From Epithemia pelagica (Eukaryota; Protista; Bacillariophyta), in NCBI GenBank assembly GCA_946965045.2, contig OX337233.1, positions 1,736,001 through 1,800,000 of the forward strand: a stretch of DNA of 64,000 nt. The letters run 5' to 3'. The notes beneath the pieces were generated by a model, which searched no databases, had not been told where the DNA came from, and was given only the letters and a program-made list of their open reading frames with translations. Position numbers and translations under genes: made by a program. Below are positions 27,091 through 53,631 of this stretch, in pieces (the first letter of the stretch is position 1; the number at the start of each line of letters is the position of its first letter).

Positions 27091-27130
27091 GATTTCATGG
27101 TCATCTGGAACACCACCGATATCTGCAGCC

Positions 27131-29258: not shown

Positions 29259-29625
29259 ATGGGTCGAGTGAGAACAATACGAAAAAGATCAGCTTTCGAT
29301 CGAAAAAACGATTCAACTGATAGAACAAACAGAGTCTTCCCACGATCACACCAGGAACACGAAACTCGGGTTCGTCGCTATTGTCAACGACCATTTGATT
29401 TGAGAGGCATCACTCGACATGAGAAGTCCTGTTCTGTAGATCAACGTGTCCCTCAGCAGTGTATACCAATAACGATTGCCAATCAAGAAAACGACAGTGA
29501 TATGGATATTGATTCTTTGGCAGGTGCAATGGATTACTTTTTGGACGAGGAGGTCGAAGAAGAGGAGAATATACGAACATACACCAAACCATATTACGTT
29601 CCTGGCGAGACACAAAAGATAATTG
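29259..29625 (+). pseudogene. N-terminus of a probable Plavaka-like transposase (Zn finger plus acidic tract), fused in frame to Copia gag
   Basis: MGRVRT...(R)RYCQRPFDLRGITRHEKSC resembles a CxxC...H...C finger with the first Cys as CGT; then an acidic stretch; gag-like sequence starts at NFEACQQYF. Confidence 0.45.
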
Positions 29626-30761: not shown

Positions 30762-30767
30762 TGGAGT

Positions 30768-33700
30768 GTGCCCTGTGTATCCGCTGCCGAAGCAGTAAAA
30801 ATTGACAAAACGAATCTTATTGTTCAATCGAATGCACATGAAGGCACCCATTCTCTTTATTCTAACCGTTTCGCACATCGTCTATGTGCTATGAACACCG
30901 ACGAATATAGTGTTGAGACCATTGAGCTCACCTGTGAGTTGGACTCACATGCGGACACCTGTGCCGTGGGAAGAGACTTCGTAATGCTCTCCGAACCCCA
31001 CCGCTATATCAGTGTGCATCCGTTCGCGGAGGAATATAATCCGCTGACCAATGTCCCTATTGCGACTGTTGCTACTGTCTGGACTGACAGCGAAAACCAG
31101 TCTTCCTTGCTTGTCATCCACCAAGCATTGTTTTTAGGGGACCGTATGGGCAGTTCGTTACTCTGTCCGAACCAGATGCGTGCCCATGGCATCGTTGTCA
31201 ACGACGTACCTAAACAGTTTGACCCGCACAGCACGCATAGTATCCACGTACCGGATGCTGATCTCACCATCCCGCTCACCATGGCTGGTGTGATAAGTGG
31301 TTTCGCCACTCGCAAACCCACTTCTGACGAGCTGGAACACTTGCCAAAAGTTGTGCTAACTGCCGATAGCCCATGGCAACCTCGTTCTGCCGCCTTTGCG
31401 GACGCGGAGGAGAAACTGGGTGTAGCTGCCGCTACTGTCGTTCGCAATGGCGATCCAAATTCGATTGCCGCATCCTCCATTCCACGACTCATCAAAGCAG
31501 TGCGAACGTACCAGCATGCTTTTGCCAATCCATCACCAGATCTGGACGCCGACGCACATGGCGACGACCTGTACAAACGCTTGATAGCGACGGTCACTGT
31601 TCAACCAGAGAAGGAGGAGCCTGATGTAGTCCCGGAGGACAAACGTGAACGTCGGCTGTACATGATCAAGACTGCTAAAGAATCTTCCCCAGCCAATCCT
31701 GCTGGAAAGGGAGTGCTTGACGCAGCCGTACTGTCACAACGTTGGGGCATTGGTTTACCCAAAGCAAAGAATACGCTTAAAGTGACGACGCAGGCTGGAG
31801 TACGAAACGTATTAATCCCATCTGAGCGTAAGGTCCGTAAGAAGGCACCGTGGCTCAAATTCCCTAATGTGAAAGGCCGTTGGTTCTCGGACGAGATGTT
31901 TGCGAAGGAAGTATCACTGAACGGGGATACGGGCGCCTCGATCTTTACCGACGGCAAAGGATTCGACCACGTTTATCCCTGGAAGTCGAAAAAGCAACAT
32001 CCTGAAGGATTGATGTCTTTGATTCACAATGTAGGGATTCCCCAAACAATGGTATCTGATGGTGCCCGAGAATTGTTCCTAGGGAAGTCCCGTGAAATAT
32101 GCAACGAGTACCGCATAAAGATGGAGAAAACGGTTCCTTATAGTCCATGGCAGAACGCCGCCGAAGCGAGCATTCGTGAACTAAAGAAGGGAGCTGTCAA
32201 AATTATGAGGACTACCGGCGCACCACGACGTTTATGGAGCTATGCTCTTAAATGGTGCTCACACGTACGGCAACTCACGGCATCCGATATCCCTGAATTA
32301 GATGGACGTACACCGTTCGAGCATGTAATTGGCTCAACGCCAGACATCTCTTCATTAGCCATGTTCCAATCCTATCAGCCGGTGTATTATCGCATGCCCA
32401 TGGCACAGTTTCCCTTCGAAAAAAGACTGATTGGCCGATGGTTGGGCTTAGCCGATGATTGCACCGACGATATGGCCTATGAAATCCTAACGCAAGAGGG
32501 CAATCATGTCACACGGAAAGATGTGTGGGCCATTCCGGAAGACGACCTGAAGAATCCGATGATTCATCAGCAGTTGTTGGACTATGATGCCGCTATTCAA
32601 ACGCAAATGAAAGAGCCGCCATCTGATGGCACAACTGGGAGCGATCCACCCTAGACCTCTTTGACGAAGGTGAACTTCTAGAGCCCTTGTTCCCAGAGGC
32701 CGAAGCCCTGGAATCCGACGCGTACACGCCAGAGGAACTAGACGAATATCTCACCGCTGAAGTCATGCTGCCGCGAGGAGGTGAAAGCGCTCGAGCGAAA
32801 ATCATTGGACGCATGAAAGATGCTCATGGGCGACCTATTGGTGAGCGCGACGCAAACCCAATCCTTGATACCCGGTACTACGACGTACAGTTTCCGGATG
32901 GATCGGTCGAGTCGTATGCAACCAATATGATCGCAGAGAATCTGTATTCGCAAGTTGACCCGGAGGGCAATGCGTTCAACACATTGAAAGCCATTGTGGG
33001 TCACCGCAGTGATGAGACCGCAGTTAAGCGAACAGACGCATCGTTCCTTGACGGCACATCACACCACACAACGAAAGGCTGGGAATTGCAATGTGAACTG
33101 TCCGATCAATCGACTGTTTGGCTGCCGCTCAAAGACGTCAAGAATGGAAATATGATTGAAGCCGCCGAATACGCAGTATCCGCTGACATCGCAAAAGAGC
33201 CTGCTTTCGCATGGTGGGTGCCACGTGCACTTCGCAAACGAGACCGCATTATCAAAAAGGTAAAGTCACGTTATTGGAAGCGAACGCACAAGTATGGCAT
33301 TGAGCTGCCCCACTCTATGGAAGAAGCTCTGGCGATTGACCGCCGAACAGGGACTGACTCGGCGCAAGGCTATTGAGAAAGAAATGAAGAACGTTGGCAT
33401 TGCTTTCGAATTTCCAGCTGATGGCGAAGTGCCTCCTGGATACAAGCATATTCCCTGTCATATGGTTTTTGATATCAAATCAGACCTGCGACAAAAAGCA
33501 CCGTTAGTGGCCGGAGGCCACAAAACTGATCCACCCAAAGAATCGACCTATTCTAGTGTGGTATGACGCGATAGCGTACGCATTGCTTTTACTATCGCTG
33601 CACTAAATGGTCTAGATGTTCTCGTCGGGGACGTGCAAAACGCATATCTCAACGCACCGACTAAAGAGAAGACCTATACCACCGCGGGACTCGAATTTGG

Positions 33701-34997
33701 ACCAGATAAGGTTGGACAACCTGCACTGATAGTGCGCGCATTATATGGTCTCAAAAGTTCTGCCGCAAGGTGGCGTGATCACATCGCCGCAACGCTCCGC
33801 GATATGGGATTTAAGATGTGTCAAGCTGATCCGGATGTATGGCTTCGAGCGAACACTCGACCATCTGATGGGTTCCAGTATTACGAGTATGTTTTGGTCT
33901 ATATTGATGATCTGCTGATTGTTAGTCATGATCCCAAAACCGTGATGCAGGACCTGCAGAGGCGCTATACGATCAAGCCCGACAGTATCAAACCGCCAGA
34001 CGAATACTTGGGATCCGAAATTCGTTGTTATACTATACCCGACACGCAAGATCCGTCGAACCGTGATCGTTGGGCCATGTCCGCTGACAAGTATTGTAAG
34101 CGTGCTCTTGCCGAAGTCGAAACGGAACTGGAGAAATCCGGAGAGAAGCTGAAGTCAAAAGTGACGACGCCGATCGCCGATGGATATTGCCCGGAATTGG
34201 ATGCGACTCCTGAACTCGACGCAAGACGTGCAAACTAATACCAAGGACTGATCGGTATTCTCCGTTGGATTGTTGAACTCGGTCGTATCGACATTACAAC
34301 CGCAGTCTCCCATATGTCCCGTTTTATGGCGCATCCACGAGAAGGACATCTCGAGCAAACGTTGCACATCTTCGCGTATCTGAAAAAGTAGGATAAATCC
34401 GCCATTGTGTTTGACGACACAACCCCTGACTTCGACGAGTCACGTTTTACCCGACCGGATTGGTCTGAGTATTATCCTGATGCTGCCGAGCCGATTCCGC
34501 CAAACGCACCAGCACCGCGTGGAAACGCTGTCACCACGACTTGCTTTGTCGATGCTGATCATGCTGGATGTCGTGTCACACGGCGCTCTCAATCAGGAGT
34601 CCTACTGTTCTTGCAACGAGCACCGATCATGTGGTATTCAAAACGACAAAACACTGTTGAGACGTCTACATTTGGCAGTGACTTCGTGGCGATGAAAACT
34701 GCCATTGAAATGATTGAAGCATTTCGTTATAAGTTGCGAATGCTGATGGGTATCCCGTTGGATGGAGAGACGAATGTGTTTTGCGACAATGAATCTGTGT
34801 TTAAGAACTCAACGCAGCCGGAATCAGTCCTAAAGAAGAAGCACAACGCAATTGCTTATCATCGGACTCGTGAAGCGCAAGCTGCTGGACATGTGCGCAT
34901 TGCATGGGAAGAAGGTGAAACGAATCTTGCCGATATCCTAACCAAACTGCTACCCGGACCTCGATTGCGATTCCTGGCCCAACGTATCATGTGGTAG
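30768..34997 (+). pseudogene. Copia pol: protease, integrase, RT, RNase H, disrupted
   Basis: ELDSHADTC; MVSDGARE...PWQNAAEASIRELK; HMVFDIK, DVQNAYL, LYGLKSS, YIDDLL; FVDADHAG, FCDNESV, NLADILTK. Frameshifts ~32650 and ~33360; stops at 33564, 34236, 34389. Confidence 0.95.
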
Positions 34998-35109
34998 CAC
35001 CCCTTTAAGATCCAAAATGGGATCGCCCCTTTTGAAGAATAGTCCGACGTACTGGACCGGCCTCTGCTGACATGACGAACTAAACGAAGTTGCCCACCCC
35101 GATTTTGTT

Positions 35110-35290
35110 CGCGGGGACTGAATAAATAATCACGGGTGCCCCCTTTGTAACCTACGAAGGGCCTCGCCATACCTCGCTACGCATCGCCTGGCATCGCCCG
35201 GCCCCTAGTTATGTGTTCGCTAGTGGGTACCATGGTCGCTGTTTGGCCCCTACGTGAGCGATTTGCCCCCAAAGGGCACCCCTAGTTAAG
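35110..35290 (+). repeat. Polypurine tract and truncated 3' LTR
   Basis: gcggggac then TG (35119) 120 nt after the pol stop; internal inverted pair gggtgccccctttg / caaagggcaccc; no terminal CA located. Confidence 0.6.
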
Positions 35291-35292
35291 TT

Positions 35293-36315
35293 GCCATAAT
35301 TTCTGATAGTTTGATTGTTGCAAGCCGTATATTGCGTCTGGCCGTCAGTTTTTATTCAGATGGCATGTCAGACACAAACCATTTGCCATTTCCTCTGGGC
35401 GTTATGGTAGAGGTTCCCGGTGGTAACAACCAAAGAAAACGACATCGGACAGCAGGTCCATCGACCCCATCAGTTGGTGACGATAGCCTTGGACAACGTC
35501 GATACACTGAAGTAGTCGAGGTTATCGTGAAGTATAAATCAAAGACGAATCATGGTATGACATTACCTGGATTTTGTCTCCACTTTTTCAAGATCCATCA
35601 TCAACGTTTCTATATGCACATGCACAGTGACCAACAGGGCACTAACCAACTTGGAACAACAGAAAATCCATATGTTTTGTTGACTGGATGCACAGAAATA
35701 AAGATCAACCATCCACCCATTGGGACTATCCGGACACATCCCAACTATCAAAGTGAAGGCCCATGGCGGGATTGGGTCATGGCCAAGGTACCTCGTAATA
35801 AACGGAAACCTTTGGACGAGATTTACAATCTTCCTTTGGGAGACATGGATACCGAACTGTGTCAGACTATATGCTTTCTTTGTATTCCCTTCGCACAACA
35901 GACAGGAGAAACACATCAACCAGAGAGTACCGATCATACAGCAACTCATGTACTGCTTCGAACAACATATGTTCAGTCCCAAACAGACCTAAAAATGTCT
36001 TCTGTTCTTTTCAACAGATGGAGAAAACGTTTCGACATGGAGAGAATAGCCGAAGTCGTTATGGTTCCAGTCCAGAATATCATACGACTAGTTGGTGTTG
36101 TCGACGAGAACTCAGAAATGATTGAAGAACGAGATGCAGTCCCCCAATTTCTCCATTCTTCAACAGAACGTGAGCTATTGCAAGAAGATAACCGTAATCG
36201 AGAGAATTTCTCTGATATTGTTTGGGCTGTTCGTGATATAAAAGAATGGGCAGTGGAATTCAATAAATCTGCCACTCCAAAATTGAAAGACAGGTATAAG
36301 GATCAAGAGTCCTGA
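35293..36315 (+). pseudogene. C-terminal third of a Plavaka-like (CACTA-related) transposase
   Basis: IRTHPNYQSEGPWRDWVMA, ELCQTICF, SSVLFNRW, VMVPVQNI..LVGVVDE, terminal VRDIKEWAVEF match the C-terminal pattern I recall for Plavaka transposases; catalytic core absent. Confidence 0.65.
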
Positions 36316-36506: not shown

Positions 36507-37715
36507 ATGGTTGTAAATCCGTACATCTCCCAAAAGAAGTCTAAGCCAATTGGTAGTAGCAAGGCCGGAAACGAAAGTCAAGTTCTTCTCGTTGATAGTA
36601 CAAGCCAGAAATCAAAAGAGAACAGCAAACGACCTCTATGTGAACACCACCCGATAAATCCATATACAGCCAAGAAAGTAAAACACGAACCGTCACACGA
36701 TCCCTCCAAGTCCAAACCAGACGATGCCACTGCTAACAACACAAATTCTGGCCTCTCCACACTTGTTCAAATGATCGAAAACCAAGAAGAAGCAACCACA
36801 AGTACACACAAACTGCCGTCACCATTCCAAACTGCTTTAACAGCAACTAAGGAAACCGTAGGTGTGAACATAAAACCGATGAATACGACAGAGAAAGCTG
36901 AGGAGTCCAAGAGGTCTAGCATCACCAACCCATACAACAAGAATATAACAAACCCATACAAGACGAAGCCGAAAATAAACACCAATCATGGAAAGAAAAT
37001 CCCATTACTACGTGATTCACCACCGATGTACAAGCCTCGACCGAATCGCGAGAAACTCAACCCTGAGGTTGTTAAATTCACCGAGCTTGTGAACCAAATC
37101 TATGGGTCCAACGATGTTAAGCCCGAACCCATGTGTCCCTGGTGTTTTGTAACAGATAATCTGTCCACCGACAGGTACTTGACCGGTAAATGTTGGCATC
37201 GTTTTGGAAAAACACATTCATGTGTGGAAAATTGTTATGGCTGTGGTGTACCAATGAACGGATGCGATTCAGGTGGTAACGAGCGATGTTGTACTGACGC
37301 CTTGTATATTCATGATTCTATGAATATAACACGTGAAGAATCAGACATCAACAAGGTTGCACTTGTGTGTAAATGCTGTCTTCGCCCGTGTAACTCTTAT
37401 TCTGAATGTGTGTATTCACATGGATGTTGGAACTCTCCGAACAAACATTTCGTATGGAGATTTTGTCATATTGCCGGGCGTGCTTTGGTATACTCTGAAC
37501 TAAAACTGAACTGTAAAGGACCAGGGAGTATCCCGAAACATGCACAGGATATAATCAAAACTGCCACAGAGTTGATGTACAATGAACTCCGAGATCCTTA
37601 TGAGTCATCGCAATACAACTCACCATTTTGTCATGTTATGGACCAGGATTCATCGTCAAAGTGGTTGGTTACAATGTCTTTCGGGAACTTCCACAACTAT
37701 ATGCCATTCTTCTGA
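36507..37715 (+). CDS. Unknown Cys-rich protein, copy A (intact, 402 aa from ATG)
   Basis: Disordered N-half with NPY repeats; C-half CPWC...CWHRFG..HSC..NCYGCG...VCKCCLRP...SPNKHFVWRFC...SKWL...FHNYM. Confidence 0.7.
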   Translation: MVVNPYISQKKSKPIGSSKAGNESQVLLVDSTSQKSKENSKRPLCEHHPINPYTAKKVKHEPSHDPSKSKPDDATANNTNSGLSTLVQMIENQEEATTSTHKLPSPFQTALTATKETVGVNIKPMNTTEKAEESKRSSITNPYNKNITNPYKTKPKINTNHGKKIPLLRDSPPMYKPRPNREKLNPEVVKFTELVNQIYGSNDVKPEPMCPWCFVTDNLSTDRYLTGKCWHRFGKTHSCVENCYGCGVPMNGCDSGGNERCCTDALYIHDSMNITREESDINKVALVCKCCLRPCNSYSECVYSHGCWNSPNKHFVWRFCHIAGRALVYSELKLNCKGPGSIPKHAQDIIKTATELMYNELRDPYESSQYNSPFCHVMDQDSSSKWLVTMSFGNFHNYMPFF

Positions 37716-38155
37716 CACTGCTACAATACTCTGATGTCATCGAAGTACTCCCGACAAACTTAGGTAAATAACACAATAGGAACAGTTAATCGCATCACAG
37801 TCGCCATCATACCAGTAGCTCCATCGTATCGCATCACAGTCGCCTTTTTCTGTCACATGTAAAATTTCATAGGAAGAGTTCAGCAGCGACAGAGAGACAT
37901 AAACAGAAAACGAGAATGGACAAACGCCGACAGGAAGCCAAGCAAGGATCTCCAAAGCAGGGATCTGACGACGACTATGATCCGGACAACAAAGATGGGT
38001 GGAGTGAAGCAAAGGGACAGTCTGGTTTCAAAGAGGACTCAGGTAGTACCAGCTCCGGTAGCAAGGAAGAGTCGAACAGTGATGATAGCGAACAAAAACT
38101 CCTGTACCCGCTGTGGTTTCGCTAAAACATCCTCCACAACAGTCAGGTACTGGGG

Positions 38156-39269
38156 ATGATGAAGAATCTACAGATCATGGTTCATCTGCTACCACCCTTC
38201 TCAAAAGAAACTTGCCCCGGAAGGCAAGAAAGGAACCCACCGTCAAATCCGTATCGAATGCGACATTTTCCAAGAAACGTCTACCTCGCCGGAAACAACC
38301 GGCACGAAAAACGTTGGGAAACTGGGAACCAGATACGTCGGAAAACACCCGCAAGGAAAACAGTGCGCGGGGGTTCTTGGCACCCAAGTGATGGACCATC
38401 ATCTTCTGCCCATGGTGGTTCGGAAACTCCCAATATTGCCAGAAAAGTAGCTGCAAACAACTCTCAAGGACCAGGAATTCATATCAAAGAACCAGCACGA
38501 ACAAATAGCTCTTTGAGCACTCACAAAATGGTCGTTGATGAATTCATCTCCTTAGTGGAAAGTATTTCTGATCGGACTCGAGACAGTAAATCACCCTCAC
38601 CAATTTGTCCTTCCTGTCTTGTTTTCGGAAGAGACCCTTACCACATCTTCGGGAGTGATGGACACCTGTGTAGTATCTGCTGCCACGGATGTGGTATAAA
38701 CCATTATCGATGGGAACACCTCAGGGATGATTACAAATGCCGCTCGTTTCTATACCAGGACAAAAAAATGGGGCAAGAACACGAAGAAGCTTTTGACAGA
38801 GACTGCCGATGGCATTGACAGCGTTAAACGCATCATAACCGAACTCCCAGACGTTTGTAAATCTTGTTTACGTCCAAACATGACCGGAATCAATCAATGC
38901 CCAAACCTTGGTTCGTTATGTTTCACTTCTCCGAATAAATACTTTGTTTGGCGGTTTTGTGCCCTGGTGAGGGATGCCATATTTACACAGAAAGAAAAGG
39001 GTGATGATTATGTACCGCCTCTACACTCTACGGAAATTCTACGGCATATGCGAAAACTCATACAGAGTTCGATTCTCCATGCATGGAAGGAGGTGGGACA
39101 CACCTATTACCAATCACACAAAGAGTTTTCACCATTCTCACACGATTCTGGAGAAGAAACATGGTCGAAGTGGTTATTCTCTTGTCCACCGAACAGAGGA
39201 TTTTACAATTACATGTTCATCTTCAACGTGTGTTACAAGGCATGCATGTCCGAGGTGGTCGACAAATAG
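38156..39269 (+). pseudogene. Unknown Cys-rich protein, copy B (one frameshift ~38765)
   Basis: CPSC...HIFG..GHLCSICCHGCG then VCKSCLRP...SPNKYFVWRFC...SKWL...FYNYM, collinear with copy A; shift at an A7/G4 run. Confidence 0.7.
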
Positions 39270-39917
39270 GGGTCGAAGACCTGCCCAAAAGAATGATTTC
39301 TTCGGACAAACAAGGGAGAACAATTCAAATCTATATATCGTCGTAAAAACCCATTCCTTTAAGTTCCAGTAAAACCACAAAACCTCCTTCTCTTAAGTCC
39401 GTGCAGTAATTATCTTTCTAGCCAGTTGCATTCACATTCGAATTCTTTACTCTTGATTAGGAGACTCTTGCTGACGGACTCTTGCTTATGAGACTCTTGC
39501 TTAGGAGCTTCTTGCTAGTCTGTGTCGTGCTTCTTATTTGGCAGTCCATACCTAACACCCAACAGGTCTATTGCCTTGTCCACATCCTCCATTGGAATTA
39601 TATCTGAAAGCCAATGAACGCTACATGTATCATCATGCAGTGCTCATGGGTTTTGCCTCAGATTATCTAAGTCCAATCAAGGAAGTGTACAAGGTAATAG
39701 GATCTGAAGGGGTTGCAGAGGTGTACTTTGGAGACCCTTGCCATACCGAGTGTGAATTCCTCATCTTTCAAGGATTAGGGTAAATGGGCTTACGACAACA
39801 TTCAAATCTACCAAACAATGGAGCTAGAAACCATATTCTCTTCATAGCTTCAACGGCAATTCTCGGTGAAGCGTTCCAAGACTCAATAGAAGCGCTAGTG
39901 ACAGCGTTCACCGTGGC

Positions 39918-41489
39918 TTACTCCAAATCCTTGGGCGGTTCCGAATCCTTACTAGGTGGTGCGGCTTGTTTCTGGTCAGTCATGTTCAAGTCCTCAGCGG
40001 CAATCGCTTGCTCCGAATCCATATTCAAGTCCTCAACGGCAATGGCCTGCTCCGAATCCTTAGGTGGTTCCGCTTGCTGCTTTGAGTCCACCTGGATTCT
40101 AGGTGGTGCGGCTTGTTTCTGGTCAGTCATGTTCAAGTCCTCAGCGGCAATCGCTTGCTCCGAATCCATGTTCAAGTCCTCAACGGCAATGGCCTGCTCC
40201 GAATCCTTAGGTGGTTCCGCTTGTTGCTTTGAGTCCACCTCACGAGTTGCGGTAGCAGTCGCTTGCTCCGTGGCTTGCTCCGAATCCTTAGGTGGATGAT
40301 TTGTGGCAGTGGCATGAGTTGTGGCAATGGCTTGCTCCGAATCCTTAGGTGGGTCCGCCTGCAGCTTTGGATCCTTTGGTTGGTCCTCGTCCATGGCAAC
40401 GGCTTGAGTTGTGGCTTGTTTCCGGTCGGCCATGTTCAAGTCCTCAGCTGCAATGACCCGCTCCGAATCCTTCGGAGGTTCTGTCTGCTTCTCTGAATTC
40501 GAGTCCTCCCCGTCTTGCATCCGATCCGTTGCCTGTTCAGAATCCTTAGGTGGTTCCACTTGCTGCTTTGAGTCCACCTCACGAGTTGCGGCTGCACTCG
40601 CTTGCTCTGTGGCTTGCTCCGAATCCTTAGGTGGATGATTTGCGGCAGTGGCATGAGTTGTTGCAATGGCTTGCTCCGAATCCTTAGGAGGTTCCGCCTG
40701 CAGCTTTGAATCCTTTGGTAGGTCCTCATTGGCATGAGTTGTTGCAATGGCTTGCTCCGAATCCTTAGGTGGTTCCGCCTGCAGCTTTGAATCCTTTGGT
40801 AGGTCCTCATCCATGGCAATGGCATGAGTTACGGCATTGGCTTGCTCAGAATCCTTCGGTGGTTCTGTCTGCTTCTCTGAATTCGAGTCCTCCCCATCTT
40901 GCATCCGATCCGTTGCCTGTTCAGAATCCTTCGGTGGTTCTGTCCGCTGCTTAGAGTCCACCCCATGAGTGGCGGCTGCAGTCGCTTGCTCCATGGCTTG
41001 CTCCTCATCCTTAGGTGGATGATTTGCGGCAATGGCAGGAGTTGTGGCAGTGGCTTGCTCCGAATCCTTAGGTGGTTCTGCAGTCGCTTGCTCCGTGGCT
41101 TGCTCAGAATCCTTAGTCGTGGCAGTGGCTTGCTCCAAATCCTTAGGTGGTTCTGCAGTCGCTTGCTCCGTGGCTTGCTCCGAATCCTTAGGTGGATGAT
41201 ATGCAGCAGTGGCAGGTGGATGATTTGCGGCAGTGGCATGAGTTGTGGCAGTGGCTTGCTCCGAATCCTTAGGTGGTTCTGCCTCCCGCTTTGAATCCTT
41301 TGGTAGGTCCTTGTCCATGGCAACGACATGAGTTACTGCATTGGCTTGCTCAGAATCCTTAGCGGCTTGTTTCCGGTTCGGACACTCCGTGACAGCCAGG
41401 TTCGACTCCACTTGATTAGAATCGGTTGTGGCCTGCTTCTCGTCGTGGTCATCTCCCAACTCTCTTTTCTCATTCACTGTTGCGTTCAA
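39918..41489 (-). repeat. Coding repeat tract (PPKDSEQA-type units)
   Basis: 17 PPKD motifs with higher-order block duplications; acidic and Ala/Thr-rich. Confidence 0.9.
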
Positions 41490-42130
41490 TGACCTTGCGT
41501 TCGCCCCCCAAAACTAACCAATCGTATGTCCGTCCTGTTTTGTATGAGTATGAACTGACGTTCCATGTCGGATAATTCTCCCATCCCATGCAATGGAACA
41601 TCCGTGGAACAGACGAAGACATAGTCCACTGAATGTTGTTTCCCTATACTTGATGAGCACATTAGGTAGGACGAAATACCAATCACGTGTACTTCCTGGT
41701 TTGGTTTCAGTCCATATAGTAAATGAAACTGATGCGTCATGGATGTCATAATGACTTGCGTTCATTAGGTCACAGCTTAATAGCATGGACGTAGAGACAC
41801 CTCTCGATTCCCCACCGAGCACATCTGGGATCTTCCCTCCACAATTTGTCTCCATATGCCGTATTGCTCCTAAGACCCCAGGGAGTTTCCGCTCGCAAAA
41901 CCTTCGTACACCGCAACTTATTTTTGGTAGGACCCTTCCTGTATCCGTGGCGATTTTCAGGAGCTTGTCGGAAAATACAGTTTCTCTGTCCCCTGTTTTA
42001 GCACAAGTACCAACCGTTGTCATCAAACCTCGGTCACAAGTGTTACACCTGGCGTTGGATGCACGTTGTAGTTCGTTTCTATCAATAAACATACAAGCCC
42101 TCTCATGCATTAATGATAACAGGTTGTCAT
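41490..42130 (-). other. TET/JBP-type 2OG-Fe(II) dioxygenase domain of the giant gene
   Basis: NASHYDIHD (HxD 41745-41753), WYFVLPN, GLCLRLFHGCSIAWDGRIIRHGTS (distal His 41565-41567). Confidence 0.7.
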
Positions 42131-43879
42131 CTGATCCAACCAATGAAGTCACTTTCAGGTGAGAGATACTTTCCGGTCCTCCTTGGAATTGGCGTGTCCT
42201 TATAATGAAGACTGCATCACCAGACTCGCGTTGATCATATCGTAAGCAATTCAACTGTTCGTCATCGTCTATGTTCTGGTAGAGCGCTCCCTGGACATAC
42301 TTCCGACAACCACGTTTGTTACTTGAATTTCCAGGTTCCAGGGCCGCCCTGTATTTTACTCTGAGATCGTGTTGACCGGCCGTTTTCGAATTAGGATTCT
42401 CTGTAGTGTAAAAGTTGGGGGCAACAAGAGGCGCTCCCGATTCGATGTCGTTGAGTTGATAACATTCGTGTGTGTTTCTTGTTCTTCTAATCCAATCTAA
42501 AGACCAAACATTCTTGATGTTCTTTATGTAGGCTCCTTTTGCCGGTTGTCCATCAGAATGACGAAGACGTAACCACGACAAGGGTAATGGGACCAATGAC
42601 GACAGAGAATTTGGCAAGGCACACCCGGAATCCATTGAACGTGTTGATGTATAGAATATACCTGCCAAAGGCATGATTAGAATGATATCATGGAACAGAT
42701 GATCCTTTGATTCTTCACAATTCTCTTTTGACGTTTGGATTTGAATGACCTTGTCGTCGAATGCTGATTTCATGACACTCGGTCTCCCTCTCCGAATGCG
42801 GTTACACCTTTCTAACGTACATTCAACAAGGAAGGCACACGGGGATGAATCGACCAGATTACTAGGATTGCGTTGCTTGACGGTGAGCGACCTGTCTCGA
42901 AAGGCACAATGACTGGCTGTGTCCTCTGTATTTTCTTCAACATTCTCCTTCATACTCTCATACACTCGACTCAGTTTTCCCATTACATTCGGAAGATTGG
43001 CGGCCGACACTCCATCCCTTTTGAGTAAGTCGTTTAGACACAGTTTGAATACTATGTGGTCTTCATTACAGGCAAAACAACACGACAACAAGTTACCGAG
43101 TAGATCCATCTGCTTCTCACGGTCAATTCGTGGAGAGAACAGACACATGGCCTGATGGTCATCTTCGTTTGGTTTCGAGTACTTCATAGGAAAACCACTG
43201 GGGGTCTCTTCTTGTCTTTTTCGAAACTTCTTCAAAGTCTCTCTTGTCAAGGTTAGCTTGGATAAGCCTTTCTTTTCCACTTCTTTGTTTGTCGGTAGCA
43301 GTTTGGGATCTGTGTATTTTGTTACTTTGGTCGGTCTGTTGGTGGTTGCTTCAGAGTCGTCTTGTTCAGGTTCTCTTCTGGCACTCTTTTTCCCGTGACC
43401 ATCTGCTCCTATTTCCGGTGTAGTACCTTCCGTCAATGCCTCTGTTGTTTGTGAATCATCACAATGTCCTTGCCTAGATGCAAGCTCGCGATTAACCGAA
43501 GGGTGACTGGCACGAGATGATGGGTCGTGATTTTGGTTCCATCTATTCGAACCGCTCCGTTCATGAGTATGCGAACTATGATCATCCCACCCTGGCCTGT
43601 GTCCACCGGTAGACATGCGTTCTCTTTGATCACTATTTGCGGAATAACGACCGTCATTGTTTCTTCTTTGGTTTATAGCGGGCGACTCTCTTCTCTCCCG
43701 GTAAGTCCACCGGTTCAGAGGAGGACTCCTATAAGTGGATGAAGGATGGTAGTCGTCAGTATGATTTGGTCTCCAATCATGATATGAAGATCAATTTATG
43801 TTGTGTGATCCATGGTTGTGACGTCTATCACAGTCCAGAGAACCACCACTATTCTTCCACCGGTTGAAATTAGGACTTG

Positions 43880-44119
43880 CGCTTCCTGTTCTCATTGTCG
43901 TTTCACCTTGTGACGGACAACAGCCCCACCCATCCGATGTGCTTCCTGTTCTCATTGTCGGTTCACCTTGTGACGGACGACAGCCCCACCCATCCGATGT
44001 GCTTCCTGTTCTCATTGTCGGTCCACCTTGTGACAGACGACAGCCCCACCCATCCGATGTGCTTGCTGTTGTCTTTGTCGGTCCACCTTGTGATGGACGA
44101 CAGTTCCAACCGTCTGATG
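43880..44119. repeat. 60-bp tandem repeat x4 encoding SDGWG units on the minus strand
   Basis: gcttcctgttctcattgtcg...cagccccacccatccgatgt at period 60. Confidence 0.95.
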
Positions 44120-44629
44120 GAACAGAAACACCCGGTACTGCTGTTGGGTTCTTCGCAAGTCCCCAAGTCTGTCCACTTTGTGATGGCCCTGACACTCCTC
44201 TCATTGGTTTTTCCCTACTCCCCAAGAATCTTGTTGTGAGTTCAGTTCTCTGGACATATTATTATTACTGCTCACAGATCCCCATGATGAAGACACTGAT
44301 ACACTTGGATTCATAGCGGAAGTATTTTCGGTATTCCTTCCCCAAGTGAACGGACTGGCATGACGAGAATGAGATGCACTTGCTACTCCAGTGACCTCTC
44401 TCTTCCCACATGTCGATATTCCTGTCAAATTGGAAGAACAATTTTGCTCTCTAGATCCTGTCGCACGATTCTGTGTACTAATTGTTGGCGGTTCCTCTAA
44501 ATTGATCACAACGTCAGTTGTCGGTGAAGGTGGCGGTTTATATTCTCGTTTGTGTGTCACGATACTGACGATACCATCTTCATTGATTCCATTCAATGCA
44601 TCGAAATACTTAAGATGTCTGATTGTATC

Positions 44630-45045
44630 TCGACACTTGGGGCATGTCTTGTTACTTTGTCCTTCCTATTTAACCACTCTCCTATACACTGTCGACAGAA
44701 GCAATGATCACAGTCCTTGATCCGACAATCCACAAATCTGTCCTCACACACCATGCAAACTTGGGGCATGTAACTCTCGACAGTGACATCTGTAGCTTTT
44801 GGCTTCCCCCCTTCAGATCCAATAGGATTTGATATCTTCTTACTAACCACAGAGGTCTTATCTCTAGAAGAACCGAAAAGATGCTCGTTACCAGTGATCT
44901 TCTTGTTGCACTTGGGGCAAGTCACGCTATGATGTCGAAACCAAATTCGAAGGCAACTTCCATGTACCTTGTGTCCACACGGGTACAACGAACAAACCTT
45001 GTCATCATTTTTCGTTTTCAAGGGACGTTGACACAACACACAACA
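44630..45045 (-). other. Tandem RING-H2 and RING (C3HC4) fingers
   Basis: CVLC...CGHKVHGSC...CPKC; CMVC...CDHCFCRQC...(frameshift) CPKC. Confidence 0.85.
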
Positions 45046-47679
45046 CTGCTTCCATGTTGTGTCCTCGTCGAGAGTAGTTTGGACAACCTTTTTCGTCTCG
45101 CAAAGAACCGCGAGCTGTTCAAGCGACTCTTTTGGGCAAAGCGAGTAGTTAGGTACGTAACGCAGCACATCTGCCTCGTTGCTGAAGACATCAGAACAAC
45201 CTCCATCAGACAAGCTTCCTCTTAGACTTCTCTCGTTATTGTAAGCGTCCCAATTCTGTGAATCACCGATTTTGTCGACACTCTTCCTCACTCTGGAACA
45301 TAGCGTTAAGGGTCTAAATTCATTGTCTTCCAGAGCCATTTCAATCCCCCTAGCGAACTCGCAGTTGTATCTGATTTGATTTGATTTCCAAGAGGTGGTT
45401 GGTCTCATTGTCGAATCTACTTCCCCATACTTGCGGTGTTTCCCATGTGGACGATCCAGCAGTAGATCCCCAAGAAAGCGCACCACAATTGCTTGGGGCA
45501 TCGGTTTTGGTCCTGATCCTGATGGCTTGGGCATCTGAACAGTCCGGTATGTCCAGTCCTCCGCATCAGTAATATCACCCTGGTCCTCCCAGGGTTTCAG
45601 AATTGCACTATTTCCGTCCTTATCGACGATACTCCATTTCTTCAGGATGTATTCACACGTTCCTTTCCAAAAGGTAGGGGAGCGGTTGTTGACAGGCTCA
45701 AAGATATGACAGATCTTCTTCGAAAACTCACATACCAACAATGCCGGATCAGTTATGTCATGTAAGGAAGTTGTAGCAACGATCACCAGTAAAGTCGTTA
45801 CACCTTCTACCTTCCAAGACTCAATAGGTATGGGATTTAGCATATCATCAGACTCTAGAGCTGTTGTTGCCACCCTGTCAACATAGACGCGTTCACTGTG
45901 ATAGCGATGCACCATAAGTTTAATGCAAGTATCGAATGATGTTGCATCAAGTCCGAGTCGTCCTTTATTGCAAATCAGATCGCGACGACGATTGCGATGT
46001 GGGATATGTAACACATGGGATGCCGATAGGATATCGTCGTTGATCAATCCACTGAATTTCTTGCACTTTTTACAACAAAAGACCACTTGGATATCAACTT
46101 CGGTATTTGGAATCTCTAGACCTGAAGCATAGTTAGTCGCCAATTTCATAAAGGTTTGGAGTTGCTCTTGTAGCATTTCCGAGTCATCTTTCGCAAATTT
46201 AACAAGATAGTTGTCGCCAATGTTGTCTAACGGTTCATCAGATTGTAATGAATCAGTCGACCGAATGTGTGGCAAGGGATCTTGTACTTGGGGAACTTCT
46301 ATGAATGAAACTGATGGTGATGGAATTCGAGTCTGTTGTCCACCTTCTATCGGAATCACTTGGACAGGAGGTGGTGGTGCCGATTTACGCTTCAGTGCTA
46401 TTCTGTTGAAGGTTTCATGTCGGTTACCAGTTGCCAATGTCGTAGGTTTGTCACTATCTGTCACGCTTTAAGTCGGTTGGGAAGGGAGTGCCGGCCTCTT
46501 GGAATCCTTGCGTGAATCGCGTTCACTCTCCACAGTCTTCGTTCTGCTTTTCCGTGTCGAAGGTGTTACATGGTCCGTAACCGAAGCATGGCGTCTACTG
46601 GCTGCAACCTCTTTCAATTTCCTGGAGGATAAGGATTCCTGTTTCTCATAGAATGACGCTACGATATAAAACATCCCATTGGTATTCGTCGTAGAGGCCT
46701 TGTTTTTCATCCTTTCTTGAAGCGAATCACGTTCATCAATATATTGATTGAACCAAGTATCTGGCATGGTATAAAGCAGCGCCTGTTCCATTTCAATATC
46801 AGTGAGAAATGGCTTTCCGTCATCTGCCTGGAGTATGGAATAGATCTGTTTCATATGCTCCAGGGCCCAGGTAACCTTCGAGGTTGGAACGGATCGAGGT
46901 TTTCGGTACTGAGAGACATCTCCAATCAGGTAATTCTTGAGTGAAAGAGCAACACGACCAAGTCCACTTTCATCCCCAGCAAATATCCCATGATGACTGA
47001 GGAAATGTCGGAAAACATCCATCAGGCTAGTATAATCGGCATATTGACATGAGGAATCAGGGAAGGCTTTTCTCCAAATAGAAGCACAAGATCCATATAA
47101 GGTTTTGCGGAAAAGAGATACCGTAGTCTTCAATGTAACACTGTTATCCTCTTCCATTTCTGAAATAAGTCGTTGGAGACAGTATGCCGTGTGACAGCAC
47201 AAATCTACCAAGGCAGTAGCATCACAAATTGGTAGATAGACATGGACTTGGTTGGTACCCTGCGACATAGAGACCGTCGAAAATTTTCCTGTTTCAGGAC
47301 CACATACACACTCATACCAATACAACATATTCTCGAAATTGATCGGAGACTCGAGGCAATCAGCATCTACTGTTCCCGGATGTACACTCGGACGAGTAGT
47401 AACCGGTGTAGTCGTATCTGCCAGTCGTCCCGATCGACTGCCACAGTGTCCCTCAGATCTCGTTTGTTCCCTCGAAATACTTTGTTCCGAAGCTCTGGCG
47501 TGAGTATCCCGATGGGGAGAAGGGGGGTTCTTGTACCGTGGTCCTTTCACAGCTTTTCTCCTTCCTGCCATGATCACAGAGAAAGATTTCAGATGGAGAA
47601 TGTCCCAAGATCCGATGTAGGGGCCTTTTGTTCGTAAGGCTTATCTTCAACGGACCAAGTCTCAAAATCCGATGTCGGC

Positions 47680-49185
47680 AGGACTAGGGAGAGAGATCCA
47701 GGAACTTCCTTGACGAAGCACTCTTGTTGTAGCGTATCCTCGCAGTAGTCTTCTAGATGGAACTTCCTTAAAAAAGCGCCTTTGTTGTAGCGTCTTCTTC
47801 CAATGACCAGGTAAGGAAGAATCAGAAGCCCGATTAGCCTCTTCCTATCAACACGACAAAGTCCAATGTCGGCCTTTTGTTGGTAGTGTCTTCTGTGGAG
47901 TACACAGGACTAGGGAGAGAGGAGGTCCAGGAACTTAGCGCTTTTGTTGTAGCGTATCCTCGTAGTAGTCTTCTAGATGGAACTTCCTCAAAGAAGCGCT
48001 TTTGTTGTAGCGTCTTCTCCCAACGACCGCGCAACGAAGAATCAGAAGCCCGATTAGCTTCTTCCTCTTAACACCACAAATTAGGAAGAGCGAGCTACTT
48101 GTGCAGCTCTAGGAAGCGCTTTTGTTGTAGCGTCTTCCACGAACAATCGTCGTCTTCTTAGTGGAGAAGGAGTGTGGAAGAATCTGAAGCACTTTAGTTA
48201 TAGTTTCGACAGATTCACTTCGATCTCTCAACAACACCAAGTAGAAAACAAGGGCGAGGAACTCTACCCTTCAAGCTGCTCCACCCCCAGAGGAAGCGCT
48301 TTTGTTATAGCGTCTTCCAGTGGACAACCACAGTCTCGTATCAAGTGGAGAGGTAACAGGATAGCAGAAGCACTTTTATTGTAGTGTCGACCGGATTCCT
48401 TCCCTCGTATCCACCCAACGTGGAACAGTGATCTATCCCTGAGGGGGGTGCTCTTCGTCTTCCCTCTTCGACCCTTGGAAAAAATCAGGGTAGAGCAACC
48501 GGTTAGTACCGTGTTCACTCAGCTTGCTTTGACCTGTCCTGATTTTCACAAGAATCTTAGAGGTAGTATCTGGACTTGACGAGTACTAGCAAAAAGACTT
48601 GAGGGGCCAAAAGTCGCTTTGATTGTAGCGGTAACTTTAATAGTGCCCCCAAGTTGTTTCTTGTACACTGGACTGTTGCTTGTTTTCGAATGATGTCGGA
48701 AGGCGGTCGATTGGAATAGTAATGGGCGATTCAACAATCAAATATTGTCTTCTTCCTTTCTTCTGACGATTGAGATTTGTAGGGAAACAAGGAGAAGAGA
48801 AGGAGAATCAAGAAGTGGACCAAGTCGAAGTCGCTTTGATTGTAGCGGTTACTTTCGTGGTTTCGACTTGCTTGCGATCAGAAAGAACAAGAGGATGATT
48901 CAACAATCAAAATAGAGTCTTCTTCCTTGCTTCTGGTGGTTGCGATTTTCAGGGAAAGGAGGTGGAAAAGGAGGGAGAATCGAATGAGAGCTCTGTCAGA
49001 ATTCTGCACCAGTGGTAACGTTTGTGTCCTCTCTTGCTTGTTTTGATGATCAATCAAACAATAGGATGATTCAACAATCAAAGAGATACTTCTTCTATGC
49101 TTCTGGCGGTTGAGGTTTTCAGGGAAAGGGGAAGAAGAAGAGACAATAAAAACAAACCGATTCAAAAGTCGCTTTGATTGTAGCG
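47680..49185. promoter_or_regulatory. Upstream region of the giant gene with eight CGCT-N8-AGCG motifs and a ~170-bp duplication
   Basis: Motif at 47777 (variant CGCC), 47939, 47997, 48117, 48297, 48615, 48832, 49170; duplicated block ~47680 / ~47905. A regulatory role is inferred. Confidence 0.45.
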
Positions 49186-49871
49186 ATTACTTTCTTCTTT
49201 CTCCTTCCTTGTACACTGGAATTGCTCCTTGTTGATTCCGAATTGAATTGAAGATCGAATAGAAGTGGGAGAGAAAAGGATTGAACAATCAAACTCTCAA
49301 TGAGACGTTTTGGGGGGAACACCGTGTTTCTCTGCTAAGAAACAACAAACGAATGGGTAAGAGAGGCTGGTTGTTATGGGGAGATTCGATGATCTCTTGT
49401 TTCTACTTACCGTTGTTCTATTTGTGTCAGGTTCCTTCGGGGTCTTTTGTATCAAGAAGGTTGTTGTTGTTGTTGTTGTTGTTGTTGATGCTCTTGTGTT
49501 TTTTGTTGTGTTTTGAGCAGCAGGGAAAAAAGAGAGGATCGGATGGAGGGAGATGAATGAGTAACGTGGTTGGTTGTTGGTTGTTAGGTTGTAATAGGAA
49601 TTCGTTGATATTACATGTAGTGGCAGTATTTCTCAGCGGTTTACGGTTGGATTGGGGATGAGAATGTCTTGGACATTCTCTGGGACATGTCATGGCGTCA
49701 GAGTTTCTGGCAGCTGCAGTTGTGACGTGTGTGGTCGCGTTTTCTCGTGTAGGTGATGGACAGACCGACTATTTGGTCTCGTTTCAATTGTAGGTGACGG
49801 ACAGACCGACTAGCGCCTAATTTATTGCTCGAGGTACATGTGCTATCCCTAATGTGCGCATTAATATTAGA

Positions 49872-50000
49872 AATAATGCGCATAACTGGGAAATAATGCG
49901 CATTATTTCCCAATAATGCGCATTATTTCCCAATAATGCGCGTTATTTCCCATTAATGCGCATTATTTCCCAATAATGCGCATTATTTCCCAATAATGTG
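49872..50000. repeat. 20-bp tandem array of the palindrome ATAATGCGCATTAT
   Basis: aataatgcgcattatttccc x~6-7; includes the 24-bp perfect palindrome gggaaataatgcgcattatttccc (49888-49911). Confidence 0.95.
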
Positions 50001-50717
50001 CTCTATAATGCGCTATTATACCTCGAAAAAATGTGGGAGGGCCTGTTTTCCCTCCTTAGATGTCTTCAAATTCCATCTGGATCTTGTCTCAAATACTTCT
50101 TTGCAGACAATTCAACAAACTGGCTTCCAAATTCATTAGTATACACTTTTGGTGTTTTGACGTCCCACTTTTACAAGAATCGTTCTGTGGTATTTGTCAA
50201 TGCTCCTGTGAACTACACTGGCTATACAATCGACAAATTCCGAAAAGACTCTGGTTATATCACTGAAATTTCCAAAGAAGACCCTTATTTGAAAGACATT
50301 GTTGCTCTTGTATTGGGATATGACCATTTCGTTGTGATGCACTTTCGCATTCCAGAGAAGAGGATTACAGTCTATGATGGACTGAGTGGGAATGACCTGA
50401 CAAAGTGGAACAATAGTTCCCTAGTCATATTATGGCGATATGGCCTGATCAGTGTTGATGATTCTTCAACACCTTGTCACTGTCTTGAAAGTGACCACGG
50501 GATTCATCGAAATGAAGATCTCTTGACAATGGCCCATGATTCAAGAATGAAAGGTCTTCAAAAGGATAGTCATTCGTGTGGAATTCTTGCATCATTAGCA
50601 ATTATTCATCTCATCCGACCTGTATCAAAAAACCAGAAACGAGGAAAGACCTACATCCAAGCCGATGTCCCCAAGAAACATGGCGTTCTACTGTTGGTGG
50701 ATTGTTCCAAAAAATGA
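49998..50717 (+). CDS. Ulp1-like (C48) cysteine protease domain, transposon-associated
   Basis: DHFVVM (His), VYDGL (Asp), QKDSHSCG (Gln/Cys): complete catalytic set; true start uncertain. Confidence 0.75.
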   Translation: MLYNALLYLEKMWEGLFSLLRCLQIPSGSCLKYFFADNSTNWLPNSLVYTFGVLTSHFYKNRSVVFVNAPVNYTGYTIDKFRKDSGYITEISKEDPYLKDIVALVLGYDHFVVMHFRIPEKRITVYDGLSGNDLTKWNNSSLVILWRYGLISVDDSSTPCHCLESDHGIHRNEDLLTMAHDSRMKGLQKDSHSCGILASLAIIHLIRPVSKNQKRGKTYIQADVPKKHGVLLLVDCSKK

Positions 50718-51718: not shown

Positions 51719-53631
51719 TTAATGCCGGTAACGATGTTCCGATGAACCAACCAACTGTTTTTCCAGACGGCAAATTGTCAGTGCAATTGTCATCCCCATC
51801 ATGATGATGGTGATGCACAGATGTGCAATACCACCCATCGACCTCAAGCTCTTGAACAATGACAAGACGCCTGGAAATTTTCTCGACATGAAGTTGGACA
51901 CTTGTTTCATTGTATTGGCAACACGTTCAGAAAGGTCCACGTCGTCATCGTGGAAAGAAATGCTATGAACTGTCCGTTTGAAACGATGAAACATGAGACC
52001 AAATGCACTCATATTACCTTTGTCTCCAGTGTTGCGACGACAATTGGCACCACGTGCGAAAGTTTTCGAGGCAATGAACGTCCTTGATAAGGAAATGAGT
52101 GAATTGTATAATTGCTCTGAGGGATTTACACAACAAACAACAACATTGGACTGAGTAATTGGTCGACGATTGCAATCCAAAATGGTTGTTTGAAAGCAAG
52201 TTGATGATTGACCTCGTTCAGCTATGGGATCAAAGACAAAAACAGAGGATAGAAGACTATTGTACGAGGCTCCAGGAACCTATCGCCGACATCCAACTTT
52301 GTTTGAATCGGATTTCCGGAACAAAGTTTGATAATGATTTCGTCTGGACATGGTTGAGAGACAGTTGGATTCCTCTCCCAACAAATCAGGAGGGAGAACA
52401 GGAGATTCATTGTCGTCCTCGTCAAACTGAATGCAATGTAGAACACGGGGGAATGATATTGATGGATCAACAAGGCCAATGGTCCAAACACGATTGATGA
52501 ACTGTATGAAAGCACCACGTCCAGGGAGCCCAGTTGAATGCACCAATCGTAGCCAGGAGATGGGAAGAGAACTCATGGGAGATTGGGTTATGGAACTTCC
52601 AACGCCATATTCCAAGTCTCCATCACCATTGGAATCATCCAGTTGAAATGCCGTGGTCCAAAATGTGGCAGCATGAGGGGAAACCATAATAATGGTGCAA
52701 AAGACATGGTCATGTTCACTTCCACACAAGGCCTTGGACGTCCTGGTACGAAACACAGTCTCGTAGTACCGAGTTTCGGCTGAGATCAGTGGTTTCTTAT
52801 GTGTTCTTGAGAGCACACAATCAATCAAATAGGCTCCATGAAGTTCTTGAGTGAGTTGAATGGGTTCACCGTCGCGAACCTTGAAGCTCGTATGACACAA
52901 AAAACCTGGGTGGTGTTTTTGCAAAACCAAATATCCGTCAAGAATGCACCGGGTAAGTACAGGGATGTCAGGACATGGTCATGTTCACTTCCACACAAGG
53001 CCTTGGACGTCCTGGTACGAAACACAGTCTCGTAGTACCGAGTTTCGGCTGAGATCAGTGGTTTCTTATGTGTTCTTGAGAGCACACAATCAATCAAATA
53101 GGCTCCATGAAGTTCTTGAGTGAGTTGAATGGGTTCACCGTCGCGAACCTTGAAGCTCGTATGACACAAAAAGCCTGGGTGGTGTTTTTGCAAAACCAAA
53201 TATCCGTCAAGAATGCACCGGGTAAGTACAGGGATGTCAGGAATGGAGGTTCAAACTGGCGACAGAAATATGGAGTTGATTGATTGCATTGAATGTTTGA
53301 TAAAGTCCTTTTGTAGAGACGGTGGGAAACAAAGGGAATACATTTCTGTTAGAAATAAATTGAAGTTGGACGTATCGAAACAACCATTAACATGTTTCTG
53401 AGGATTGGGATGTGCTTTGATGACATGGATGATCCCAGGTGGACGGTTGGATGTGACACCTGTCCTTTTATGTTTGGCAGAGTGGTTTACCTTCATGCTG
53501 ATGATGTGAGGTTTGGATCGTACCAAGGAAAATGGTCTTCGGTTGTGAAAGATTTTTAAATCAACACATGAAAGATAGGAAATAAGTACAAAACGATAAG
53601 TATTATGTGTTGATTTGACTTGTAGGGACAA
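51719..53631 (-). pseudogene. Diverged second copy of the unknown-domain plus TET/JBP module, HxD core deleted
   Basis: LPISWLRL.HS.G.PGRGAFI vs LPLSWLRL.HS.GQPAKGAYI; SNKVGCRR*VPGASY vs SNKRGCRKYVQGALY; NCRRNTGDKGNM vs NARCNTCDRGLM; then jumps to CTSVH...TVGWFIG. Confidence 0.75.
52703..53241. repeat. 269-bp near-perfect tandem duplication
   Basis: Units at 52703 and 52972; one mismatch seen (aaaaaacc / aaaaagcc). Confidence 0.95.

Follow-up and report, generated by a model that had tools for sequence, protein, structure and literature searches.

A decayed gene with RING fingers, a GW tract and a TET/JBP-like fold inside a giant Plavaka-like transposon of the diatom Epithemia pelagica

The DNA considered here, termed the window, is a stretch of 64,000 nucleotides from the diatom Epithemia pelagica (assembly GCA_946965045.2, contig OX337233.1, forward-strand positions 1,736,001–1,800,000). 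Positions 39918–47571 of the window hold, on the minus strand, a pseudogenised and non-functional copy of a long gene, which is unable to make its protein. As read from the sequence, the ancestral protein of ~2,550 residues consisted of a family-specific N-terminal domain, possibly a Ulp1-like domain, two RINGs, a disordered WG/GW tract, a TET/JBP-fold dioxygenase and an acidic repeat tail, in that order. Sequence comparisons identify the element around it as a giant cut-and-paste transposon of the Plavaka type (CACTA/EnSpm-related), with the long frame as its main accessory gene. It is very probable that the frame derives from a transposon gene, now decayed, which coded for RING fingers and for a TET/JBP fold. 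The explanation that accounts best for the observations as a whole, held with moderate confidence, is that of a dead Plavaka accessory gene whose intact ancestor may have had an anti-silencing role.

The sequence-only reading of the window proposed that six separately listed open reading frames (ORFs) are one interrupted frame. The ORFs are on the minus strand at 46468–47577, 44593–46464, 44201–44596, 43791–44225, 41514–43616 and 39918–41489, in frames 0, 0, 1, 2, 2 and 2, and both these frames and the read-through in a sister copy (locus L001, see below) bear the proposal out. From its true start, an ATG at 47571, the minus strand runs to 39918 as a single frame of ~2,550 codons, interrupted by three stops and by two shifts of frame; ~120 stops would be expected in random sequence. 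The first break is a stop at 46468–46470, TAA in the window and TTA (Leu) in L001. The second is a frameshift at ~44668 that splits the second RING; the window is without one G, and L001 reads EWLNEEGQSNKTCPKCRDTI. The third is a frameshift in the A run at 44207–44216, with five A residues in the window and seven in L001, and as only six would be in frame, both copies are out of frame here. The fourth, like the third in or beside the WG/GW tract, is a stop at 43791–43793, a CpG transition to TGA where L001 has CGA (Arg). The fifth is a TAG stop at 41514–41516. Here L001 has TGG (Trp); P0002 likewise has Trp, and its alignment continues past the stop. Thus four of the five breaks are open in L001, the exception being the A run.

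The two frameshifts had been described as single-nucleotide deletions in A runs. This holds for the run at 44207–44216, which is one residue short of the in-frame length, and does not hold for the other, where the lost base is a G that lies outside an A run and 8 nt from the position first given. The accompanying claim that repair completes a RING (KTCPKCR) stands, as L001, with the extra G, reads ...NKTCPKCR. It should be pointed out that all five breaks of the window, including both indels, are known from the assembly sequence alone. Contigs from public sequencing runs carry solely the L001-type sequence at 41515, in the A run at 44207–44216 and at 44667.

The sister copy comes from a match of the 700-amino-acid piece of the frame to protein P0001, at 96% identity. 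P0001 is encoded on locus L001 of the public assembly ERZ21939226. L001 and window positions 37412–49193 are 97–98% identical, with the non-coding parts included, and homology stops at 49193 within a microsatellite. A base-by-base alignment of the two shows that L001 has breaks of its own, unlike those of the window: deletions of 52, 1 and 2 nt, and a G run lengthened by an insertion of 4 nt. Contigs of the public runs X1–X3 independently show these L001 breaks. Because the breaks differ between them, the window and L001 are independently decayed copies of one long ORF. L001 may be either an allele of the window locus or another copy; their copia insertions are at different places.

CpG transitions (CpG to TpG or CpA) make up 65 of the 341 differences between the window and L001 (19%), and one of them made a stop. 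This proportion suggests cytosine methylation of the copies, present or past. In runs X1 and X2, word depth at window positions 42702–42763 and 43660 is ~125 for the L001 type and ~55 for a window-like variant. Perhaps both sequence types, or a third copy, coexist in the organism from which these runs derive.

The TET/JBP-like dioxygenase module, assigned from its predicted fold and motifs, is at 41517–43169 on the minus strand and represents the last ~550 residues of the 700-amino-acid piece. It has a helical N-terminal extension followed by a double-stranded beta-helix. A word search with the module finds few close relatives; a profile search finds 934 clusters at E ≤ 0.001, of which 192 reach E ≤ 1e-30. 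Structural modelling depends on these relatives. An alignment of seven sequences gave an unusable model, with a predicted local distance difference test score (pLDDT) of 37, and an alignment of 56 sequences gave a model with a pLDDT of 89.3 and a predicted template modelling score (pTM) of 0.91. The solved structures that Foldseek places at the top for the latter model are TET2, CMD1, CcTet and NgTet1, with E down to 9e-7. All of the 15 best matches among solved structures are TET/JBP enzymes and are clearly ahead of AlkB/FTO. Clusters of the AlphaFold database and ESM Atlas add fungal Tet-like families, phage JBP1/TET families and one diatom cluster.

The active-site residues agree with this assignment. 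In the numbering of the 700-amino-acid piece, the His and Asp of HxD are H622 and D624, both unchanged in 56/56 relatives, and the distal H671, directly before the penultimate strand, is kept in 46/56. The canonical Arg that binds 2-oxoglutarate had been thought not to be obvious. An Arg was found 12 residues past the distal His, R683, which is kept in 51/56 relatives and opens the last strand (model residues 535–538), and by its position it is the probable 2-oxoglutarate ligand. The corresponding minus-strand codons are at 41751–41753 (His), 41745–41747 (Asp), 41604–41606 (His) and 41568–41570 (Arg). Thus the proposed HxD...H dioxygenase of TET/JBP type is upheld by a predicted fold together with a complete HxD…H…R set. 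The sequence-only reading had also placed an unknown domain before the dioxygenase. This stretch is real; however, CMD1, CcTet and NgTet1 align structurally with the model from residues 29–110 onwards, and therefore most of the 'domain' is the N-terminal portion of the TET/JBP catalytic fold, preceded by the helical extension.

Another relic, diverged but belonging to this TET-module family, is found elsewhere in the window, at 51827–53469 on the minus strand. It is 33% identical to residues 19–459 of P0003. Its C-terminal catalytic part is gone, and it contains a 276-bp direct duplication (52703–52978 and 52972–53246).

For the remainder of the protein, the pieces of the frame were searched separately, each ORF on its own. 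Pfam was run on all six pieces, and matches above the gathering cut-offs come only from the 623-amino-acid piece, which has both RINGs. The RING-H2 finger at 44905–45045 (minus strand) matches zf-RING_2 (E 6.7e-8, 33.1 bits against a cut-off of 27.3). The second RING, of C3HC4 type, at 44630–44763 (minus strand) matches zf-C3HC4 (26.7 bits, cut-off 21) and zf-C3HC4_2 (27.6 bits, cut-off 27), and its last Cys pair is recovered in L001. Both RING assignments made earlier from the letters alone are therefore confirmed.

The WG/GW tract follows at 43539–44344 on the minus strand. It has 11 Trp residues, nine of them next to Gly, and includes a 60-bp tandem repeat at 43881–44103. The composition is Ser/Gly/Thr-rich and of low complexity, with the 11 Trp spread over 378 residues. 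The diverged L005 subfamily also has a GWG repeat, which likewise follows the RINGs in frame and is built from a different repeat unit. The tract is thus real and recurs in a second subfamily, and its recurrence with a different unit argues for selection on the GW motif. By analogy with known GW proteins it is a candidate Argonaute-binding hook.

The acidic C-terminal tail, at 39918–41513 on the minus strand, consists of PPKDSEQA-type tandem repeats, the number of which differs between the window and L001. P0001 runs from the TET module ...HTIGWFWGANARS... directly into the tail, and the tail is therefore part of the protein, as had been supposed.

The two domains at the other end of the protein have a less certain identity. 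The N-terminal domain (46471–47571, minus strand) is 27% identical (E 2e-28) to the N-terminus of a 1003-amino-acid ORF of L002, and 35% identical to a 364-amino-acid ORF of L010. It had been called Gag-like. Four diverged members give no Gag-related Pfam match at E up to 1, and a profile made from four members matches no PDB chain, so that the name has no basis in either database. The middle domain (45430–46182, minus strand) is 22% identical (E 8e-13) to the same L002 ORF, which is intact, belongs to a 42%-identical subfamily and is colinear with pieces 1 and 2 of the frame. This domain had been described as dead Ulp1-like. By language-model features, Peptidase_C48 is present in 69 of its 100 nearest Atlas clusters (score 0.89, 156 shared features), which is at the level of a lead and makes a Ulp1/C48-like fold possible; there is no Pfam match, PF02902 included. 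The window and L002 do not share the candidate residues of a His-Asp-Cys triad, as judged by eye.

The transposon that holds the gene is at 25438–50063. It is a whole, decayed, giant Plavaka-like DNA element of 24,626 bp, or ~18.9 kb minus a nested copia element. At its transposase-side end (25438–25448, plus strand) the terminal inverted repeat is CCATCTAAGGG; L011 and L009 have ACGTCTAAGGG at the corresponding end. The terminal inverted repeat at the RING-TET end (50051–50063, minus strand), read inward, is ACATCTAAGGAGG and shares 12 of 13 bases with ACGTCTAAGGAGG, the terminus common to L002, L006, L007 and L008. In the comparison, the termini of the window element are ACATCTAAGG and CCATCTAAGG, and the consensus of the inverted termini is ACRTCTAAGG. 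At 49870–50006 a 20-bp palindrome, AATAATGCGCATTATTTCCC, is repeated in a subterminal array. By analogy with the subterminal repeats of CACTA/EnSpm elements, these palindromes are putative transposase-binding sites.

The limits of the insertion are confirmed by the gene that it interrupts. When 25438–50063 is cut out in silico, the flanks join into a 535-codon ORF of Ulp1 type that is colinear through the junction with the Ulp1/C48-like protein of L002:1821–4190, which fixes both ends of the insertion to the nucleotide. The two halves of this disrupted gene are at 24484–25437 and 50064–50717 (plus strand). The dinucleotide CT is found on both sides of the element, and the frame is restored only with a 0- or 3-bp duplication. 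The intact homologue, of 789 amino acids (L002:1821–4190, minus strand), is 149 nt outside the terminus of the unrelated copy L002. This arrangement may point to a preferred target, or to another repeated element that carries the protease.

Within the element, the window has the same gene set and order as L011, L009 and L010. Relics of three small accessory ORFs are at 25975–28471 (minus strand), where tblastn with L011 and L010 ORFs gives 37–49% identity at 25975–26478, 26641–27084 and 28169–28471. The transposase is represented by two remnants on the plus strand. The N-terminal remnant, at 29259–29645, covers approximately residues 1–116 (tblastn with P0203, 30% identity), and the C-terminal remnant, at 35383–36294, covers approximately residues 964–1268 (tblastn, 54% identity to P0203 and 45% to P0213). 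The intervening residues 117–963 are gone. The transposase is interrupted by a nested Ty1/copia retrotransposon at 29631–35358 (plus strand), which is 96.7% identical to L001:13342–19068, whose gene has PF07727 RVT_2. The element is dead, with five gene breaks, the loss of ~850 transposase residues and the nested copia.

A tandem pair of Cys-rich accessory ORFs at 36888–39263 (plus strand) is convergent with the RING-TET gene. It is 78% identical to a 342-amino-acid ORF of L010 and 44% identical to a 412-amino-acid ORF of L007; the second copy of the pair, at 38531–39263, is weaker. The Cys-rich ORF (region 36507–39372, plus strand) is conserved in all subfamilies (L002, L007 and L010), and its sole Pfam match is a weak one to zf-C2HC5.

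Better-preserved relatives show what an element of this kind looks like. The L002-type element is 21.5 kb in length with 10-bp inverted termini. Its left boundary, starting ACGTCTAAGGAGG, is sharp and common to four copies with unrelated flanks, and its opposite boundary, ACGTCTAAGGG inward, is common to two. ACGTCTAAGG is found at both ends, in four and two copies respectively. A similarity search with 200 bp of the left end missed the second terminus, which was located by comparing two copies. The gene order is RING ORF, TET ORF, convergent Cys-rich ORF, a 170-bp satellite array, a 412-amino-acid ORF, a 1376-amino-acid ORF and three small ORFs. Three clusters at an identity of at least 90% in one assembly contain 23 TET-module, 26 transposase and 53 transposase sequences, and the 23 TET-module sequences, which are of L002 type, are spread over many large contigs.

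The identity of the transposase is based on several comparisons of the 1376-amino-acid ORF. Scanned directly, this ORF and three homologues have no Pfam match with E up to 10 allowed. In the Atlas, the ORF has Plavaka transposases as neighbours (score 0.97, 220/256 shared features). A profile of four homologues matches P0234 at E 1.3e-56, and P0234 carries the Pfam Plavaka domain (PF18759, E 7.7e-10). BLASTP of the ORF against P0234 gives E 1e-31 across the Plavaka domain, and P0213 is also homologous to a Pfam-Plavaka protein. The association with Plavaka transposons that the sequence-only reading mentioned for fungi therefore applies here, as the gene sits in a Plavaka-like element and the transposase homology is found by both profile and BLASTP.

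Other repeats and genes accompany these copies. In L002 a long tandem array of ~170 bp units occupies 13089–18813, between the Cys-rich ORF and the 412-amino-acid ORF, and is also present in L006, L007 and L008. A 105-bp repeat array is found upstream of the RING ORF at L002:5330–6349. PIF1-type helicase ORFs, which are Helitron-like, are a few kb upstream of two TET-carrying copies (L005:417–611; L006:1–638 and 2947–3363).

What might such a protein do for the transposon? Active copies would express the dioxygenase, which could oxidise 5-methylcytosine on the element's own DNA and so counter silencing based on methylation. The RINGs, as ubiquitin-ligase modules, and the GW tract might recruit or neutralise host silencing proteins. 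From the fold and the motifs, anti-silencing by a RING–GW–TET protein made by active copies is plausible. Oxidation of 5-methylcytosine as the means is a serious candidate, held at slightly less than even confidence. The more elaborate proposal is doubtful, namely that in active members a single polypeptide would combine 5-methylcytosine oxidation, RING-dependent ubiquitination of silencing factors and Argonaute capture through a GW hook that would have expanded independently in at least two subfamilies. If true, the element would have encoded a silencing suppressor acting at the levels of both DNA methylation and small RNA.

Alternatively, the dioxygenase may write another mark, such as thymine hydroxylation of the JBP kind, the glyceryl adduct of CMD1 or CcTet-type removal of N6-methyladenine, which might tag the element's DNA as self or affect its excision or integration. 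This is considered unlikely. The best structural matches of the module are 5-methylcytosine oxidases bound to DNA, and the copies show CpG decay. Diatom transposons are methylated at CG, according to published reports.

Several findings weigh against an ancestral RING–GW–TET protein carried by a Plavaka transposon. Pfam gives no TET match for the 700-amino-acid piece of the window at E up to 1, neither to PF12851 nor to PF20515; none of the 56 relatives of the module matches any Pfam model at E up to 0.01; and phmmer and a sequence profile of the module find no chain among PDB sequences. Membership in the TET/JBP group therefore rests on fold and motifs. The transposon clade is reported to have 5′-CA..TG-3′ termini and target-site duplications of 2–5 bp (PMC12730594). 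The termini here start with ACRTC, unlike this rule, and no consistent target-site duplication of 2, 3 or 8 bp is found in the window and the L002-type copies; the flanks of two L002-type copies do not match. The ratio of non-synonymous to synonymous substitution (Ka/Ks) between the window and L001 is only ~0.5, which suggests that selection still acted on the lineage during part of the divergence. An intact copy of the GW-containing subfamily was not found. The best-preserved type, L002, has a stop and 180 nt in another frame between its RING and TET ORFs. P0003 and P0004, from other organisms, are TET modules on their own, and L003 encodes its RING protein in a distinct gene, a convergent neighbour.

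The last of these findings raise the question of whether the pieces in the window represent separate RING and TET products, with the open linker an accidental repeat expansion in a former spacer or intron. The stand-alone proteins P0003 and P0004, which begin with a PKKKRK motif resembling a nuclear localisation signal, fit this scheme, as does the spacer that L002-type copies retain, one of which holds an insertion resembling a miniature inverted-repeat transposable element (MITE). However, the window and L001 keep a linker of ~1.4 kb open save for their independent breaks, and in L005 an in-frame GW motif built from another unit also follows the RINGs. In addition, a consensus GC-AG intron of 107 nt is predicted in the L002 type, with the donor AAG|GCAAGT and, 18 nt ahead of the acceptor, the branch site TACTAAC; its removal would fuse the RING and TET ORFs into a single frame of ~1,674 residues. 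Separate products are thus improbable for the window lineage. As the linker is open and GW-rich in both the window and L001, the comparison of these copies leaves a RING–GW–TET fusion in the ancestor of the window subfamily well supported; joining of RING and TET through splicing is probable in the L002 type, judging from the predicted intron, and across the wider family the fusion is not universal.

The MITE-like insertion is ~340 bp in length (L002:9485–9823, within the RING-TET spacer or predicted intron), with the ends AAGACTGATTCCAT and ATGGAACCAGTCTT and flanking TATAT sequences. It is absent from L006, L007 and L008.

That the window holds instead a pseudogenised host gene, a domesticated epigenetic regulator and not transposon cargo, has a RING and TET architecture resembling that of a chromatin regulator and a Ka/Ks below 1 in its favour and is nevertheless extremely improbable, as the gene is enclosed in an insertion that has inverted termini and, when cut out, leaves another gene restored. 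It is also always beside a Plavaka-like transposase and the same accessory genes, and there are tens of near-identical copies, whose boundaries are sharp and shared and whose flanks are unrelated.

A transposon accessory gene is thus the reading to be placed among known systems. Transposons that carry TET/JBP genes are rare mobile elements that may edit the epigenetic marks by which they are silenced. The present element extends the phenomenon to a stramenopile alga with signs of CpG methylation, and to a family of 934 clusters with no Pfam TET match in the 56 members scanned. It also links the enzyme to ubiquitin-ligase modules and an Argonaute-hook-like module, which provides testable candidates for the escape of transposons from silencing in diatoms. 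For annotators, the family consists of multicopy elements of 19–25 kb that affect genome size and gene prediction. Particular to the window, as judged from its sequence, are the subfamily with a GW tract, an acidic tail and an intron-less fusion, and the exactly delimited insertion. This copy is of value because it documents the GW-containing subfamily and a cleanly bounded insertion.

In basidiomycete fungi, Iyer and coworkers reportedly described TET/JBP-carrying Plavaka/KDZ transposons in 2014. TET/JBP genes of fungi ride on Plavaka, KDZ and other transposons (PMC12730594). The element described here resembles the basidiomycete PlavakaB/KDZ elements (Kojima 2025, PMC12730594) in being a multicopy DDE transposon of the Plavaka lineage with TET/JBP-fold cargo and a proposed anti-silencing role. 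It differs from them in its host, a diatom-like alga, and in a dioxygenase that neither PF12851 nor PF20515 recognises and that is joined or adjacent to two RINGs, a GW tract and an N-terminal domain without a Pfam or PDB match. The element is also 19–21 kb with several further accessory genes, and its termini are ACRTCTAAGG, with no clear 2–3 bp target-site duplication, compared with CATCA..TGATG in fungi. A limited literature search found no work linking TET/JBP or Plavaka cargo with diatoms, and no published report of a RING–GW–TET architecture, in agreement with the initial impression that it was undescribed.

Giant elements are also known from other algae. In red algae, giant Plavaka elements carry the accessory genes PAG1-3, one of which has a 2-oxoglutarate oxygenase domain (10.1101/2025.02.11.637652), and giant KDZ and EnSpm elements have been found in a brown alga (PMC12477816). 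The Plavaka elements of the red alga Bostrychia, of 17–19 kb, are similar to the present one in having several accessory genes, an oxygenase, adjoining tandem arrays and mostly degenerate copies. In the red-algal set, PAG2 is a protein of methylase/SET type, and the oxygenase, which is detected weakly, is part of PAG3 together with a ParB-like DNA-binding domain. The diatom element has, in contrast, a clear TET/JBP-fold oxygenase linked to RING and GW segments, the cargo sets being compared by description.

At the level of the enzyme, the module has in common with TET2, CMD1 of Chlamydomonas, CcTet of Coprinopsis and NgTet1 of Naegleria the beta-helix, the TET/JBP N-terminal extension, the HxD…H site and the Arg that opens the last strand. 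It is only 10–15% identical to these proteins and has an additional, helical N-terminal extension. It also has an invariant extra Asp three residues after HxD, unlike the solved TET/JBP structures, and has no Cys-rich domain, unlike TET2. The disordered, Ser/Gly/Thr-rich tract with repeated GW/WG, here a candidate hook, is reminiscent of the hooks of GW182, NRPE1 and SPT5L and of the viral mimics TCV P38 and SPMMV P1. Unlike these known GW hooks, however, it is built by a 60-bp tandem repeat within an enzyme-bearing transposon protein.

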